Shown here piece by piece: positions 2,491-34,829 of a DNA stretch of 64,000 nucleotides. The notes under the pieces are model-generated. The model ran no database searches. It was not told where the DNA came from and saw only the letters and a program-made list of their open reading frames with translations. This stretch comes from Pavona decussata (Eukaryota): the NCBI GenBank assembly GCA_977016875.1, contig CDRNST010000144.1, positions 310,001-374,000 on the forward strand, given 5' to 3'. How positions within the stretch are numbered: position 1 is the stretch's first letter; each line of letters starts with the position of its first letter. The position numbers and the translations under genes are program-made.

Positions 2491-3296
2491 ATTGTAATAT
2501 ACAGTACAAAACAGCTACCAAAACTATCCAGTAAGTGTTCTGTGTACCTAAAAGGTGCATATATTTCATATAAGTTCCTAATTATCTGGCAGCTACTTGG
2601 TTGACCTTGAATTTCTGCTCGATTTTAATACACAAAACACAGTCTAAATTAAAGGATTATGGGAGGCAACTGTTTAAGTTGTGACTATTCAAAGACTTAC
2701 CCGGATAGCATAATGCTGTCTACTCTTACTTTGAATCAACAGAAGGGACGGAAGGAAATTAAGACTGACAAACCTGCAGTTAAAGAACCAGGGTAAGTTC
2801 AGTATGTTATTGACAGATGTTTAAACTGAATGAATGGGAGCCAGCTTATAAACGATTAAGAGCAATATCATATAATCCTGGAGGTTGCTATGTCAGAAAA
2901 TTTAAGTTCACTATGTTTGCAAGCGACTCACCTGAGACAGTTTGCCCTACGGTTATTGTTTTTATAATTCTTGAAGGTTATTGGTCTGTTATATGAAAAA
3001 TGAGATCTTTAATGGAATTAAAGATGAGATGCTATTCCCTGTTTTTAAATAGAGTTGCTGGTGATGATGGTGCATTATGAAGTGATAAGCTTGCATTGGA
3101 TTCTCACTTCGTGCTATAATCTCTTCAACAGACCAAATGCCAGTTGCTGGATATCTTCTAGTAACCATCGTTATTGTAACACAATTCCGCTAATTAATGA
3201 CTAACTTTCCAAGTAATTTTTCTGCTTGTGCAACCTTAATTTTTAAATGAGAATAAACCTCTTCCTGCTATACTGCACCTTATAACTCTTTCCACA

Positions 3297-3382: not shown

Positions 3383-5094
3383 AATAAGCAGTACTTAAGG
3401 CTGTGCAACCGTTTGTTTAACCCTTACACACGTTGGCATGTTGGATTAACAGCTTAACAATACACTTTAATTGACATAAAGAAACGTAACTTGTTGTGTT
3501 AAAATAATCTCAACATAAAATAATAATATGTTGGTGACCATGAGCTGGGTAAAAGGTGAGACCAGCTGGAAAAGGTATGTATCTTCCTGAATTGATTGTG
3601 CTTGATAAAAAAAACATGCATGCGCACTTCTGTAAATTCTTTGTACATACACAGAGAGACAATATCCACAAACCATACATTTCACAAATAGCATATTTGG
3701 ATTTGAGAAAGATAAAATGTCCACATGTGAAATGCAACATTATGCAAGTCATAAATATTTTACTGAAAAGCAGAACTGCACTTACTTAATTTCTCCCTCA
3801 TCCAAATTTGTTATTACTTCTGCAACTGAAAACCAACTAAAAATGTTTTACTTTTCTTGTCTATACATGTTTTTGACACAGACAATGTAAGTAAATAGAC
3901 GAGTTATTATGGAGTGTGGTATCACTAGGTTATCATTTTAAGGCAATCAGGATCATTAAATGATTACAAACATGCTCTGTAAATTTCATAGGATAGTTAA
4001 TATGGTGTTTGCCTGTTCAAATAAATGAACTGTTTAAATACTTATGTATTCATTTGCAGAGGTCTTGATCTTCTGAAGATTATGTTTAAAGGAAAATGTC
4101 TTGGCACAGGAGTGATAATTAAACAACAAAATGGTAAGATAAGTAATTATTATTTGTCCCATAGACAACTATTTTAAAATTCTCAATCTTGGTCATTGAA
4201 TTTTTAGCTTTCTCACTGGTTCATGCACCCTGTAGTCAGGTTATCAGCATAATTAATCGATAAATTGGATGCTGGGTCATGAATTAATCCTGCCACATTG
4301 ATTTCAAAGGTTTTCAGAAGTTTTGTCTCGAAGCATAATGAAAAATTCAATAACACTTCCCAATGTTGAGAATTTAATAAAATAATTAGAGTGACTTATT
4401 TATGTTAGATATACTGTACAAGGTAATGTAATATCTAACCAATTACTCACTTATCACTTCATGTTGAGCATTAGTGCCTATGGAATAACAGTGTTAAGTC
4501 TTTGAGTTCCTTAATCAAATTTACAGGCATAGACTAGCATTATCTTCCAAAACACTATTGTAAGTAATAACACTTTTCCTCTCTACGCTGAATTTCTGTA
4601 AATAGTAAATCGGTGAGAAAATCCAAAGCAATTCATCTGACTGGTCCATATAATTCGTCAAACTGTTAATTCAGATAACCAGAATCCTCCACAGTTCATA
4701 GAGAACCAGCTCATGATCAGGTTTACAAGTAAATCAAGAGTTGTTCTCAATTTTTTGGTTTTAGAAATGTTTTCTAGAGTTTTGCTTAAATCAAAGTATT
4801 TGAACACCGGCCTTGGAGAGTTCAGTCTCCCGCAAACTACAGATGGGAAAACAAAACTCGATGAACTGAAGGTCAGTGTCTATATATAGTCAATAACAGT
4901 GTTTGGTTTTTGAATGCATGCTAATATGAACGAGTTGTAACTCGTGGGAGCAATCTCATGCTCCCACTCAATCGGGTGAAGTTGACTTTACTGGAACAAC
5001 TCCTTATACAACATATACAGTTTATAAGCTGACTGAAACACATGGCTCAATAAAAGTATGAGGCATGATCCCTGGCCTCTGGCAATAAAAAACC

Positions 5095-29170: not shown

Positions 29171-29944
29171 TAAATTATTATTATTATTATTATTATTATC
29201 ATTATTATTATAAGTAAAAACTGAATTTACCTACTCTTACCCTTTACAAGTACATAACCCCTCAACCAATGAAAAATATACATGTAATTATTTACGACCT
29301 GAATTAATTGTGCTATTTTCCAATCAACAGTCACCGGCAATGCAAATTTCAATATGCAATGCCATTTGGATTTTCTTCCCATATTCTGTGGTATTTTCCA
29401 CCCTCAGGGAATCCATTTTAGCTCCAGACAAATGCGAAATCGTTTTTACATCCTACATCTTTTTGACTCCATATCTACCATGTAATTCTCCACATTTCTT
29501 AAAAATAATCAAATCATACCATCGCAAAAAATTCCTATTAGGCAACTTCATCTTGCTTTCCACAATTCAGCCATATTATTTCTTAAATATCTTTGTCATG
29601 TTCTTAAATTTTAAAACTCAATACAACCTTTTCAATTAAATTGGAGCTATGATCAAAATGACTTACTGTCATTTCACTTTCCAACACAACTTAATGAGCT
29701 GCACTGTTTTTGAAAATATTTCAGTATTTTGCTATAACTCACTTTAATTAAATACTTAATAGTACTATTTTAGAAAGCTAAATAACACATTTAACTAACA
29801 GTTTATCACAAAGCATAATGCCCTATTACCAACAACATTATTATGCGATTTTTAAATCTCAATCCAAAATGCATTTTACCAGTTGATTTTTTAGCGGACT
29901 TGTATATTCATAGCAAGATGACATACCAAATAGAATGCAAATTT

Positions 29945-30165
29945 TGACCACTGTGATGACGAATATCGTTGTCGATAAGAGTGCAGACAATGCTAAACCA
30001 CATTCGATTTGTTTTTCACCACAAAATCAACGTCAAAGAAAATGTTCACTATAACTGTCAAAATTTGCGCACGCTAATTGATGCGAGCAGCGTTGTCTAG
30101 ACTCTTATCAACAACGGAAAATTAGCCAATCAGATTGCGAGATTAGAAAAAATTGTAGTAAAAAT
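29945..30165. mobile_element. Non-autonomous repeat with internal inverted repeat
   Basis: ttgtcgataagagtgcagacaatgct pairs with agcgttgtctagactcttatcaacaa. Confidence 0.5.
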
Positions 30166-30235
30166 ACTTGTATCCTCTCGTAAATTCATTTTCATGATTT
30201 TAAAAATAATTTCCTACAGTAACTGCATGCTCTTA

Positions 30236-30263
30236 GGCGGGAGTAACTATGACTCTCTTAAGG
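30236..30263 (+). other. 28-nt 28S rRNA fragment (sequence upstream of the R2 target site)
   Basis: GGCGGGAGTAACTATGACTCTCTTAAGG matches the conserved 28S sequence directly 5' of the R2 insertion site; no other rDNA nearby. Confidence 0.92.
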
Positions 30264-33200
30264 GGGGTTGCATGTTACGTCCTTAGCCCGAGGGAAGTGC
30301 CTTCACGAGTTGAGGCAGTTGTATGTGGGGGGACTTTACCATCTTCTCACCCTGTCCACAGTAATCATCGGTCTGTCTCTGGCGGGGGCCGTTAGTACGG
30401 GCCTCAGCCCCGAAGCTAAAACTTCCCAGGCCAGCGGGGCTAACCTCCCCGCTGGTCCAATCATCTGGTTCGAGACATATAAGAAGAAGGAACAGGGGCG
30501 GCCACCGCTGCCCCCACAGATGATGTACGGCGTGGTGGCACGGCGGCAGACATGGGATTGCTTTCCGTCTGTCCCGAATGCAAGAGAGCATTCGGGTCAG
30601 CGAGGGATCTGTCCCAGCACCGGCGCTGGGTGCACCCCACTGAGCACCATGCAGAGAACGTGCCCACTGCCAGGGTAAAGGCACGGTGGGATCACGAGGA
30701 GCTCTTAATCCTGGCACGTGCTGAAATTGTTCTCCAGGCATCAATCAACAATTGGTGCAAATCACCCCTGGCAGGACTCTCGAAGCCATCAAGGGAGTCC
30801 GCAAGAGTATGCGTTACCAGGAGCTGCTGGCCTCTTTACAGCCGGAGGCCCAGAGCAGCGACCTTATTGAAAGCAAATCAGTCGGCCCCGACCTGGGGTC
30901 TCCGAATGACTTCTCCGATGATACCACTCCCGACCATAGCCCTAATAGATGGGCTGTGGAGGTCCAGACGACCATTGAACAACTTGGCGTCCCTGATGGT
31001 ATTGACATCGATGCCATCAACCCTGGACTAGTGAACAACCATACCAGGGACATACTGGATGCGGAATATGCCAGGTGGTTGCCTCCACTGACAAGACCTA
31101 AGAGGAGGCCACCAAGACGATGATCTGGGACCCCAAGGGTACGGACTGGACTACCAGCAAGCACCGTAAGGGGGAGGCGTAGGACTTCCTACGCCCGAAC
31201 GCAGCGATCTTTCAGACTATCAAGGAAGCGCTCCGCTAACAATGTCCTTTCCGGTACCTGGGAGGAGCAACCTTCCCCAGTACCGGTGGCTACACAAGAA
31301 CCGTACTGGCGTGGCGTATTTCAACAGGCATCCATGCATGACGATTGCAGACCTCCACCAAAAGGGCCGGTTGAGTGGGACCTGGTCAATCCCATCACCA
31401 TCGAGGAAGTGACCAACGCCTGACGGGGCCCCAGGGCCGGATCGCCGATCCCTTAGCGGCTTGAAACGGCTTTGGCGGGAAGAGGTAGCGGCCCACTTCA
31501 ATGTGTGGCTGCTGGCAGGCTATCCGCCTGCGCCTCTCCGCCGCGGTGAGACAGTCCTGATCGCCAAAGAGCAGGGCGCCACCTCACCCGAGAAGCAACG
31601 CCCGATTACATTATCAGACACCATCTTGCGGTGCTTTCATAACATCCTTGCTTCCCGGTTTGAAACAACCTGCCGTGGAACAGGTGCCAGAAGGCGTTTA
31701 TGAAAGGGGTGGCGTGGCTGATTCAATCTGGCTACTGCAAACGATCATTCGCCAATATCAGAGGACGCTCAATCCGCTCAACATCGCCTTTCTTGACGTT
31801 AAGAAGGCCTTTGACTCTGTCAGCCACCAGAGGATGGGAGTGCCACCTCCATTGCTGGGCTATCTGGGCGAACTCTACGGAGACGCCTGGACATGCCTAC
31901 TCATTGGCCCTGACCACAGCTAGCCTATCAAAGTGGCGAGGGGGGTGAGACAGGGCGATCCTCTCTCTGTCCATCTTTTCAACGCATCTATCGACTGGGC
32001 TCTGGATCGTCTTCATCCTGAGCTTGCTGTAATGGTTGGGGAGATGAGAGTGAATGCTGGAGCATTCGCAGACGACATTGCGTTGATCGCAAGGACAACC
32101 GGCAGCCTCCAGCACCTGCTCAACGACCTTGCTGCTGAGTTTAGGCTCAGTGGCTTGGAAGTTAGTGCGAGGCTGGATGGAAAGTCAGCCAGTCTGCAGA
32201 TTGACATTGATGGCAAGAGGAAGATGTGGATTGTCAACCCACATCCCCACTTGCAGGTCTTCGGGCAACCAATTCCTGCAATAGGTGTCGCTGAAGTTCG
32301 CTGGGAGTTCCTCTCTCTCCAATGAGAATGAGGGCGGACATCACTGGCAAGCTTAATGAACATATCCCGAGCCCCCCTAAAGCCCCAGCAGCGGCTGTTC
32401 ATCCTCAACAACAATCTCATACCAGCCTTATATCACCAGTTGGTACTGACTACGACAACTAAGAAGTACCTAAAGTAGCTTGACAGATCTGTCAGGACGG
32501 CTGTTCGATCCTGGTTGAAGTTGCTGTGTAATACGCCCAAGGCCTTTTTCCATGCTAAGATCTTCGATGGAAGCCTTGGAATCGTCACCCTTGAGCATCA
32601 GGTCCCGTTGATGAAAATCAAGCGCATCGACGGTTTTTGGGCCAGCAATGACCAGTAATTAGGGAGATGCTGTCAACGGACGGTGCAGAGTCCCTGCTGG
32701 CTAAGCAAAGGGAGCCCAGCCGTTACAGGGGGTGGAGATCGCAAGTGGATCCAGCCTTCGAGCTGCACTGGCGATCGACCTCCATTCTTCTGTTGACGGC
32801 AGGGGATTGCGCGAGAGCGACCTTGTCCCACAACGACATCAGTGGGTTGCTGAAGGCACAAATCTGTAGTGCGACGCCAGTTATATAGGCAAGGTGAAGG
32901 TGCGAGGCAACGTTCTTCCTACAGCAGTCCGTTCTTCCAGGGCACGCACAGGTGTAAGCATCGTTTGTGCGGCTTCCCAGTGACCCGGATCACTTGGGCA
33001 CATACTTCAAGTTTGCCTTAGGACTCATAACTCGAGAGTTTCCAGACACGATAAGATTGTCTCCCTGCTGCAGTCCGCTGTGGGTAAAGCCGGGTGGTCT
33101 TGCATCAGAGAGGCTGCCATTCCAACCGCGGAGGGCCTGCGTAGACCCGACCTAATTTCCATCACGAATCGTGGTCCACTATCGTTCTGGATGTGACGAT

Positions 33201-33540
33201 TGTTGCTGACAGCGCGGTCCTTCACGAGGTGCATGCGCGTAAAGTCCAGTATTATGATGTCCCGGATCGCGCGGAATATCTCTGACAAACCAGTACAATT
33301 CTCTAGTGTGTTGCTCAGCTGGAGGGGGCTGATGGCTCGTGCATCAGCTGAGACCTTGTGCTAGCAACAGGGTCGGCAACTCTCAAGTCTCCTGTCCGCG
33401 GTCACCTGCGATAGGAGCCTGTGGATCTGGCATCATTTCCACAGAAGCAATTACACGCTCCGTGGATGACGGGCACTATGTGCCCCGACTTTCCGCTGTG
33501 CCTTCACGTCGGTATGTAGGGTCAACCTCCCCATATAAAA
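30236..33540 (+). mobile_element. R2 non-LTR retrotransposon, near full-length, decayed, outside rDNA
   Basis: One C2H2 finger (CPECKRAFGSARDLSQHRRWVH), Myb-like (RWDHEELLILARAE, PGRTLEAIKGVRK), RT (FLDVKKAFDSV, GVRQGDPLS, AFADD), KPQQRLFIL, restriction-like endonuclease region (HILQVC, RHD, RPDL, LDVTIV, KVQYY), stop at 33467-33469; many frameshifts; 3' boundary approximate. Confidence 0.9.
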
Positions 33541-34829
33541 GAGCAAAGAACATTTATTTACCACGACATTGTCAGTTAATGTAATCTTTATGTCTAGTCT
33601 AGCCTGGGCGCAGTGTATTGTGCTGCCCCTCACTCAAACCCACCACTCAAAACAGAAACATAATTCCTCAGGTTGCAAAGCGAGTAGTTTTTACAGCCTC
33701 TACATTAAACAGCCCTTAAAAATTTTGGATCAGCAGGATTGATTACAATTTGAAATCCCCAAAATACTTCACTTGCCCGCTGGACAGTCATTAAAAACAC
33801 AATATGTACTACTCAATAGTAACACAGATCCCTGCCAGTTAGCTGACATGACTTCCTTTGTATGCTGCTCCTACATACTCTACATTAAACTGTATATAGT
33901 ATATATTTTAGAATCTCTGTTTTGACATTTCACTTTTCTAGCATGGCAATGTTACCACTACTACTGAGCACACCAGATAGGATAACTTGTTCACACCAGT
34001 TCCAAAATTTTTCGACTTAATATTTATAACTTAGTGATTTTTGTTTCAATAATTTATTTACTTTAACATGTTACTGTCAACGTTACACTTATATCCTCAA
34101 AATGACACCTTAATGAAATGTTTCAATAGCACATCAAGTAACAGTACTTCCAACTATTACTTTCTGTACAAATAAGTATCACCTTTTTAAAAATACTGCA
34201 TGTCCATAATACCTGAGGTGCTTCTTCAGTAACCAATTCCACATTCAACCAGACAATAACTTGTATACCTGATTTATTTGCTGTGCAGGTGTATTTCCTT
34301 TGCAAGCAAGCTCAACTGCAAAATCGGAAGAGGTGTGGGAGTTTTCAACAAAGTTAGCAGATCTTGGAATGTCCATACAGAACTAGAATATTACAATATG
34401 GAAAATGATCAAAGGTAAGATTATGATCCACAGGCTATAATTATTTAACAAATTTACCAAAAAATTCTTTCCAATAGAGTAATACACGGCAAAAAAAACA
34501 AGTATTGATCATTCTACCAAATTAATGAAATCATAAAGTGCAAAATAAAATACAGTTGCACCTATATTAAGCGGCCACCCTGGCCTTTGAAAGCTGGCCG
34601 CTTAATAGAGGTTGGTCGTTTAATAGAGGTACAATATTAATTGGGTAGAAATGGCAGTCAACATAATTTTATTCCCTCCATTATAGTATATAGCAAAATG
34701 CTTGCTGAAAAGTGAACATATTTGAAGATAAATGCAAAAATCATTGAAACAAAATATTAAGTGCCCTGTATTTGTGCATTTTAAGTCTGTGCAAAGTGCG
34801 TGCTAGGCTCTAATACTAATCTGTCTGTC

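Follow-up and report, generated by a model that had tools for sequence, protein, structure and literature searches.

The window analyzed here, a 64-kb stretch of Pavona decussata DNA, contains a decayed R2 retrotransposon that begins with 28 nt of 28S rRNA sequence and lies outside the rDNA. We consider it fairly probable that this copy stems from one ancient ectopic R2 integration, joined in a non-canonical manner, later duplicated and now a dead relic. The site into which it inserted bears no resemblance to the R2 target. All features described below lie on the forward strand and are given in window coordinates.

A decayed R2 copy with a complete 5′ end

The element opens with a 28-nt leader, GGCGGGAGTAACTATGACTCTCTTAAGG (30236-30263), which is identical to positions -28 to -1 of the 28S of the same genome, as the initial annotation had claimed from the letters. 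It is followed by the R2 5′ UTR (30264-30551), which is conserved among three copies and is the expected place of an HDV-like ribozyme, and then by a decayed coding region (30552-33469) delineated with the ORF list, Pfam, phmmer against the PDB and translation. The decayed coding pieces were searched one by one, each separately (Pfam; phmmer against the PDB), and the ZF-Myb, RT and RLE pieces each had R2Bm (PDB 8gh6) as best match. An N-terminal C2H2 zinc finger and Myb (about 30567-30743) were recognized through Pfam zf-C2H2 and through a match between residues 6-64 of this piece and R2Bm residues 113-170 (E 6.5e-6). An R2-type RT is also present (31933-32322), with a Pfam RVT_1 match at E 2e-9, a phmmer match to R2Bm residues 583-705 at E 4e-10, and top PDB matches that are all R2 proteins. 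At the C-terminus, a CCHC and RLE nuclease piece (HILQVC..RHD..RPDL, 32984-33190) matched R2Bm residues 945-999 at E 2.5e-10 and is interrupted by stop codons. The three domains occupy three different reading frames, and in-frame stops occur, for example, at 32981 and 33191. Judged by these matches, the element is an R2 retrotransposon with a single zinc finger and Myb, R2Bm being the nearest relative of solved structure.

Its domain order (C2H2 finger and Myb, RT, CCHC/RLE) is that of R2Bm (PDB 8gh6, 8ibw) and of lineage-D R2; several cnidarian sub-lineages of lineage D with ZnF1-Myb are known (PMC13188248). In contrast to R2Bm, the copy described here lies outside 28S, its frame is broken, the end of its 3′ UTR is missing and Rfam detects no ribozyme fold in it. 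The part of the 3′ UTR that was retained spans 33470-33632, as indicated by alignment with independent copies and by BLAST to the tail of a sibling on contig C188. From its sequence, we thus regard this copy as a dead relic with a complete 5′ end and a truncated 3′ end, hence not full-length. The earlier description of a full-length insertion stands for the 5′ end and fails for the 3′ UTR, which lacks at least 90 nt in comparison to the C188 sibling.

Location outside the rDNA and the -28 start

No trace of a surrounding 28S gene was found. The 28S bases GGGTAAAC that precede the leader in the rDNA are absent upstream of the leader at 30236, where other bases are found, the sequence TAGCCAAATGCC... 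is absent from the whole 64-kb window with three mismatches allowed, and Rfam found no rRNA in searches of the element region and of the whole window. Furthermore, the flanks show no 28S homology beyond the leader and instead match a non-rDNA paralogue on contig C241, so that the copy does not lie in a 28S gene and its flanks are not those of a decayed rDNA unit; the absence of rDNA upstream and downstream had been correctly noted. The flanks of the ectopic relics are likewise free of rRNA, with the exception of an orphon on C188, outside the arrays, where 28S flanks the R2 piece and R2 3′ ends run into the 3′ half of 28S. The insertion site of the family can be placed at CTCTTAAGG^TAGCCAAATGCC of 28S, given that the C188 tail adjoins TAGCCAAATGCC and that the leader described here ends in AAGG. 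Of the 886 28S sites in the assembly, about 879 carry no insertion.

The length of the leader corresponds to the self-cleavage position of silkmoth R2 (R2Bm), -28, which is the commonest R2 ribozyme cut and has been reported for the silkmoth and many other R2 lineages (PMC3774820). The 5′ end was searched for an HDV-like feature in which 28S positions -28 to -22 would form P1. Rfam gave no ribozyme match at E<=1 in the element region, and two hand-written descriptor searches returned weak, non-conserved candidates only, such as one with P1′ CCCGCT at 30448-30453, which has no P1.1 and is not kept in sibling copies. The -28 cut would accordingly be assigned to a ribozyme by analogy only. A second ectopic R2 copy, on contig C334, has a different flank and also starts from -28 (GACAGGAG..., with two G>A changes). 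It sits between two repeat families, and a paralogue of its locus on C104 is without 143 nt, the R2 sequence and a further 178 nt. The C334 copy is independent, and its -28 start supports an RNA 5′ end at the known R2 cleavage position. These observations support the proposal of an ectopic R2 fossil that preserves, at its 5′ end, the start of an RNA begun 28 nt before the insertion site.

The insertion is one old event that was later copied four times on contig C144, and the resulting paralogues, at 87-93% identity, have the same 5′ and 3′ flanks, with small indels between them being common. One older paralogue lies about 97 kb away, and a second version of the entire window, about 99-99.6% identical, is found at a distance of 357 kb.

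The 5′ junction and the empty site

The 18 nt that directly precede the leader, AGTAACTGCATGCTCTTA (30218-30235), are present as the initial annotation had reported, and were taken there as a look-alike of the 28S target. The paralogue on C241 is homologous on both sides of the element, with breakpoints at 30224 and 33640, and offers a view of the corresponding empty site. AGTAACT (30218-30224) is found in this paralogue and in all filled copies, and forms the final 7 nt of the original target, whereas the 11-nt filler GCATGCTCTTA (30225-30235) is absent from the aligned C241 site, where AGTAACT is followed at once by unrelated sequence. Because the empty site holds AGTAACT alone, the insertion itself created 11 of the 18 bases of the look-alike; the filler is common to the 340k, 697k and 437k copies and thus dates from that event. 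The best ungapped identity between the empty site, seen in a single paralogue (87-91% identity) that is not the orthologous empty allele and whose breakpoints could themselves have changed, and the 60-nt 28S target was 24/60, a value matched by 65% of random regions of the window. Neither an insertion at a target look-alike nor the idea that the locus records which sequence the ZF, Myb and endonuclease tolerate is supported by this comparison, as the empty site is no more target-like than random DNA.

The same bases show a relationship to the leader. AGTAACT is identical to leader positions -22 to -16, a microhomology for which the chance of a junction-adjacent 7-mer matching the leader is about 0.0013. 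With small indels allowed for, the filler is similar to leader positions -15 to -3 (ATGACTCTCTTA), and the chance of its last 6 nt matching the leader is about 0.006. The filler thus resembles a slipped copy of the leader, an origin suggested by one sequence.

The 3′ junction

The 3′ end of the element had initially been placed at 33545, after ccatataaaa, with GAGCAAA read as a look-alike 3′ flank. Both motifs are common to independent R2 copies on C188, C20, C273 and C144 (at 1.6 Mb), and they are therefore internal parts of the R2 3′ UTR. R2 homology in fact extends to 33632 (BLAST to positions 177-214 of the 304-nt C188 tail), where it stops inside the second repeat unit of the 3′ UTR, about 90 nt before the R2/28S junction. 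The next 7 nt, CTCAAAC (33633-33639), are ambiguous in the alignment, as they could either belong to R2 or nearly duplicate CACTCAAAAC of the flank, and homology to the C241 empty paralogue resumes with the 3′ flank (33640-33941). A candidate homology between the C241 sequence that follows AGTAACT (AGGAAAAACAT...) and the 3′ flank as initially annotated (AGAGCAAAGAACAT...) was rejected, as the latter stretch is R2 UTR in independent copies and homology truly resumes at 33640.

In the C188 sibling, R2 ends in ...GTGGAAA directly before TAGCCAAATGCCTCGTCATC within 28S. Compared with this copy joined to 28S TAGCCAAATGCC, the element described here is without at least 90 nt of 3′ UTR, and a complete 3′ end adjoining the target was not found at the locus. 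A genome search returned no other copy of the C188 3′ UTR tail, so the assembly offers no rDNA-resident reference element. On the target side, the filled site is without 148 nt of the C241 empty site, a middle segment that is unique in the genome. All four filled copies have the same 3′ state or additional deletions there.

Origin of the insertion

These observations can be accommodated by a single integration through non-canonical joining. The template RNA would have been a 28S/R2 co-transcript cleaved 28 nt before the insertion site, yielding a cDNA with a 28-nt 28S leader that would have been joined at this site without canonical target recognition; the site may have been opened by either the R2 endonuclease or a pre-existing break. 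The order of elements at the 5′ junction, namely, the AGTAACT microhomology, an 11-nt filler like a slipped and aborted copy of the leader, and the complete leader, fits second-strand priming by microhomology that was restarted at the cDNA end. The 3′ junction could have been formed either by priming at an internal site together with a target deletion, or by the subsequent loss of about 240 bp spanning a once-complete junction, the order of events being read from one sequence. After insertion, the locus and its flanks would have been duplicated (giving the paralogue about 97 kb off and a block of at least 64 kb located 357 kb off), followed by decay of the ORF. If this explanation is true, the orthologous empty allele would be ...TACAGTAACT then AGGAAAAAC....

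The second of these routes amounts to a distinct history, in which a 3′-complete insertion between AGTAACT and AGGAAAAAC was followed by a deletion of about 240 bp (about 90 nt of R2 and 148 nt of flank) before duplication. One deletion would then account for both the lost end of the UTR and the 148 nt, and paralogues often differ by small indels. However, a loss of 148 nt at integration is equally possible, direct evidence for the deletion is lacking and the four filled copies all share the same 3′ state or carry further deletions, which makes us regard this history as rather unlikely. We give considerably less credence to the model of the initial annotation, in which the R2 protein recognized and nicked a 28S look-alike, with AGTAACT-N5-CTCTTA on its upstream and GAGCAAA on its downstream side, and ordinary target-primed reverse transcription placed a full-length copy there. 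AGTAACTGCATGCTCTTA does stand directly before the leader, and such a two-block match is unlikely by chance in 64 kb (the expected rate being computed for the version with a 6-nt spacer). However, the empty paralogue has AGTAACT without GCATGCTCTTA and compares with the target no better than random DNA, GAGCAAA belongs to the 3′ UTR of independent R2 copies, and the actual 3′ junction lies about 95 nt beyond, inside the UTR. Moreover, the spacer is one base shorter than that of 28S, and R2Bm is poorly tolerant of changes in spacer length (PMC12203849).

Two further explanations appear very improbable. Relocation at the DNA level, whereby recombination carried an R2-bearing piece of rDNA here and the rDNA around it decayed afterwards, has a precedent in the C188 orphon. 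It is difficult to reconcile with a 28S identity that ends exactly at -28 in two independent loci, with 28 perfectly conserved nt next to unrelated bases, and with flanks that are homologous to the non-rDNA C241 paralogue and carry no LSU signal. An equally implausible assembly artefact, with junctions that are chimeric joins, might be suspected from the recurrence of the window 357 kb away, which could be an uncollapsed haplotype. However, both junctions are spanned by assembled Logan contigs of three samples (at the 5′ junction with 36 nt of flank in one contig, at the 3′ junction with more than 90 nt to either side), the older paralogues at 87-93% identity have the same junctions, and a run under another organism label bridges both junctions of the filled site at about 91% identity. 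The possibility of misassembly at these junctions, raised by the initial annotation itself, was thus not borne out.

Relation to known R2 insertions

R2 cleavage at -28, copies of R2 and R1 at ectopic sites and 5′ junctions with microhomology have all been published before, and the copy described here is a tidy but ordinary fossil. Non-rDNA copies of R2 exist in Drosophila (Stage & Eickbush 2009, PMC2718515), and non-rDNA copies in Bombyx are attributed to Xiong et al. 1988, as cited in PMC3774820. These R2 and R1 copies are rare, mostly incomplete and diverged, and lie outside rDNA, as does the present one. Non-28S copies of R1 carry 7-28 bp of upstream 28S at their 5′ end, from which the transcript's 5′ end was deduced (PMC2718515), and the same logic is applied here to the 28-nt leader. 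In comparison to the Drosophila and Bombyx copies, the present one has a paralogous empty site that allows its junctions to be dissected, and segmental duplication has given rise to further copies of it.

Tandem 28S duplications together with non-templated bases are known from R2 5′ junctions, where they have been attributed to microhomology priming (Eickbush et al. 2013, PMC3774820); in that account, integration takes place at the cDNA end and no heteroduplex is involved (PMC3774820). As in those junctions, the full leader is kept here and extra bases precede it, but their upstream partner is true 28S, whereas here it is unrelated DNA with 7 nt in common. The 5′ junction looks like the product of microhomology-mediated repair, not of protein-guided targeting. 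Tentatively, it may represent the natural footprint of R2 cDNA-end joining without cognate upstream DNA (microhomology priming, abortive synthesis and terminal restart), and, taken together with the C334 copy and some 880 uninserted 28S sites, R2 may have died out of the rDNA of this genome, its processing signature surviving only in ectopic fossils; we regard this broader scenario as possible, if somewhat doubtful.

The locus provides a clean, datable example indicating that R2 RNA processed at -28 can on occasion be integrated away from the rDNA. Ectopic R2 events need not mean relaxed target recognition, and, where R2-based insertion tools are concerned, one should be wary of deducing off-target specificity from ectopic fossils.

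A dead R2 element preceded by 28 nt of 28S

The copy at 30236-33632 is a dead R2 element, of which a C2H2 finger plus Myb piece (matching R2Bm residues 113-170), an RT piece (R2Bm 583-705), and a CCHC/RLE piece (HILQVC...RHD...RPDL; R2Bm 945-999) are found in three different reading frames interrupted by stop codons. As the initial annotation had proposed, it starts with a 28-nt leader from 28S (30236-30263, GGCGGGAGTAACTATGACTCTCTTAAGG), which is an exact match to positions -28 to -1, counted from the R2 site, in the rDNA of the same genome (...GCGGGTAAAC-GGCGGGAGTAACTATGACTCTCTTAAGG^TAGCCAAATGCC...). The copy carries neither the 28S bases preceding -28 nor those past the R2 site. The proposed location outside rDNA also held, as no rRNA or any other Rfam family was found in the 64 kb and downstream 28S sequence was not found in the window with up to 3 mismatches allowed.

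The 3' end had been placed at the tail ATATAAAA, with GAGCAAAGAACATTT... (GAGCAAA) taken as flanking target DNA. Alignment showed that both are internal 3'UTR, shared with four independent relics (C188, C20, C273, and C144:1.6 Mb). The relic on contig C188 terminates with ...AACGTGGAAA immediately before TAGCCAAATGCCTCGTCATC and, since it abuts 28S, marks the true R2/28S junction. With this 28S-joined relic as the reference for the 3' junction, 33595-33632 aligned with the C188 tail (304 nt) at its positions 177-214 (E 5.5e-6). R2 homology thus extends to 33632, about 90 nt of the C188 UTR have no counterpart in the window copy, and the 7 nt at the junction (33633-33639) are of ambiguous origin.

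The empty site and the apparent target look-alike

Contig C241 holds a paralogue of both insertion flanks. Its left homology (~91% identity) runs up to ...TTTTCTACAGTAACT, equivalent to window position 30224, and its right homology restarts at CCACCACTCAAAACAG, equivalent to 33640. Between the two breakpoints lie 148 nt that are unique in the genome and that the filled copies lack. Because homology to C241 ends at AGTAACT, only this motif of the 18-nt look-alike (30218-30235) described in the initial annotation predates the insertion. The remaining 11 nt (30225-30235, GCATGCTCTTA), hereafter the filler, are common to the copies that keep the 5' junction and, by sequence comparison, arose with the insertion.

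Apart from the shared AGTAACT, the empty site has no meaningful similarity to the 28S target: the best ungapped identity with the 60-nt R2 target was 24/60, a value reached by 65% of random window regions, and 7 of the 20 bases after AGTAACT agreed with 28S when aligned in register (counted by hand). Moreover, the spacer between the motifs of the look-alike is one base too short, and a review describes R2Bm as tolerant of altered sequence, but not of altered length, in the spacer that separates its two recognition motifs (PMC12203849). Insertion at a target look-alike was thus not supported, nor was the idea that the locus records tolerated target sequences. The empty site shows the apparent look-alike to be a product of the insertion itself, which is no evidence for relaxed target recognition.

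Ectopic R2 copies are known from several Drosophila species (PMC2718515) and, according to a title cited in PMC3774820, also from Bombyx; ectopic R1 copies that carry 7-28 bp of upstream 28S have previously served to infer transcript ends (PMC2718515), and Cnidaria have lineage-D R2 elements with ZnF1-Myb (PMC13188248). The window copy is therefore of a known kind, and what is new at this locus is the empty site, of small added value.

Two independent insertions end at position -28

A search of the 602-Mb genome for related copies returned four on contig C144: the window copy (340 kb), a second with 99% identity (697.7 kb), and two with 87-90% identity (437.6 and 786.6 kb). The 3' flank is common to all four, and the 5' flank, filler, and leader to the copies at 340, 697.7, and 437.6 kb; the 786.6-kb copy lacks the initial 221 nt. 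By their sequences, the four represent a single old event that has since multiplied. Wherever the 64-kb window was sampled, its sequence is found again 357.4 kb further downstream on C144 (667446-737445), in the same order and with ~99.0-99.7% identity. The repetition is due either to a segmental duplication of ~350 kb, which would be very recent, or to tandem assembly of an uncollapsed haplotype.

Elsewhere in the genome, just one leader-bearing copy was found, on contig C334 (reading GACAGGAGTAACTATGACTCTCTTAAGG). Since its flank is unrelated while the C144 flanks are shared, these copies represent two independent events, not five, and the search for further R2 copies starting at -28 thus yielded one. 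Both events stop at -28, which is good evidence that the template RNA had its 5' end there. With window 30236-33545 as the query (3310 nt), homology to the C334 copy ends at position 3139. The C334 copy (C334:612863-618956) sits between two different dispersed repeat families and may lie inside another inserted element, because a paralogous locus (C104:6283657-6284318) lacks 143 nt, the R2, and 178 nt.

Among the self-cleavage positions reported for R2 ribozymes, -28 is the commonest (PMC3774820). No Rfam match to an HDV-like ribozyme was found; a descriptor search returned one candidate with a 6-bp P1 (CCCGCT, 30448-30453), which lacks P1.1 and is not kept in sibling copies, and a conserved one within the ORF start with three G-U pairs. 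Of the proposed ribozyme cut, the RNA end at -28 is thus supported by two events, and its production by ribozyme cleavage is suggested by analogy with published R2 elements.

Paralogues carrying the insertion diverge by 10-13% from each other, which together with the broken frame indicates that the insertion is old. Regarding misassembly, three samples from a single study have Logan contigs that span the 5' (30200-30570) and 3' (33517-33733) junctions with 0-2 differences and display paralogue-specific deletions, and a run labelled as a different organism bridges both junctions at ~91-95% identity. These contigs argue against a chimeric join and are not independent proof, as the runs may include the source data of the assembly.

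R2 in the rDNA and other relics

The 25-mer upstream of the R2 site occurs 886 times in the assembly, in which the rDNA unit period is 8.53 kb, and is followed by intact downstream 28S in 879 cases. The exact upstream 23-mer is always followed by T, except in three ectopic copies with the exact leader, and the 3'UTR tail of the C188 relic, which lies outside the arrays, had no other match in the genome search. For these reasons, no array unit with an R2 insertion is shown in the assembly, and R2 seems extinct in its rDNA, persisting only as ectopic relics. Those on C273, C58, C20, C6, C104, and C144:1.6 Mb are fragments, and no rRNA was found in their flanks; C188 is the exception, with truncated R2 3' ends joined to the 28S 3' half.

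The C188 locus (151045-154391, minus strand) is an rDNA orphon comprising an R2 3' end, 82 nt of 28S, a 5'-truncated R2, and the remaining 28S. The second R2 has a tandem repeat of ~105 nt in its 3'UTR and is joined at TAGCCAAATGCC to the remaining 28S, which runs to the 28S 3' end. At 3617-3761 of a segment of contig C227, in the rDNA spacer just past the 28S 3' end, Rfam scores mir-2513 at 41.9 bits, below the gathering threshold of 89; this is probably a chance hit.

Formation of the junctions

The final 7 nt of the target are identical to leader positions -22 to -16 (chance at a fixed junction, ~0.0013). The filler ends with CTCTTA preceded by ATG, in the same order as in the leader (ATGACTCTCTTA), and its last 6 nt would match the leader by chance with a probability of ~0.006. 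The 5' junction was probably formed by microhomology-primed joining with slipped copying and a subsequent restart: the broken upstream DNA end, which either the R2 nuclease or a pre-existing break could have provided, would anneal at AGTAACT to the leader part of the cDNA, copy a short, slipped stretch yielding the filler, and resume synthesis at the cDNA terminus, such that the whole leader would be retained. It resembles the microhomology-primed junctions of some 28S-resident R2 copies, which carry extra bases between two 28S-like repeats (Eickbush and colleagues, PMC3774820). For the 3' junction, two routes are both possible: reverse transcription could have begun inside the 3'UTR with the loss of 148 nt of target, or a later deletion of ~240 bp could have removed a once-complete junction.

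Just upstream of the insertion, 29938-30165 is a high-copy repeat of ~230 bp, with more than 35 copies on many contigs among the matches listed (91-93% identity). Its first ~73 nt also match in inverted orientation beside each copy, and by sequence it looks like a MITE.
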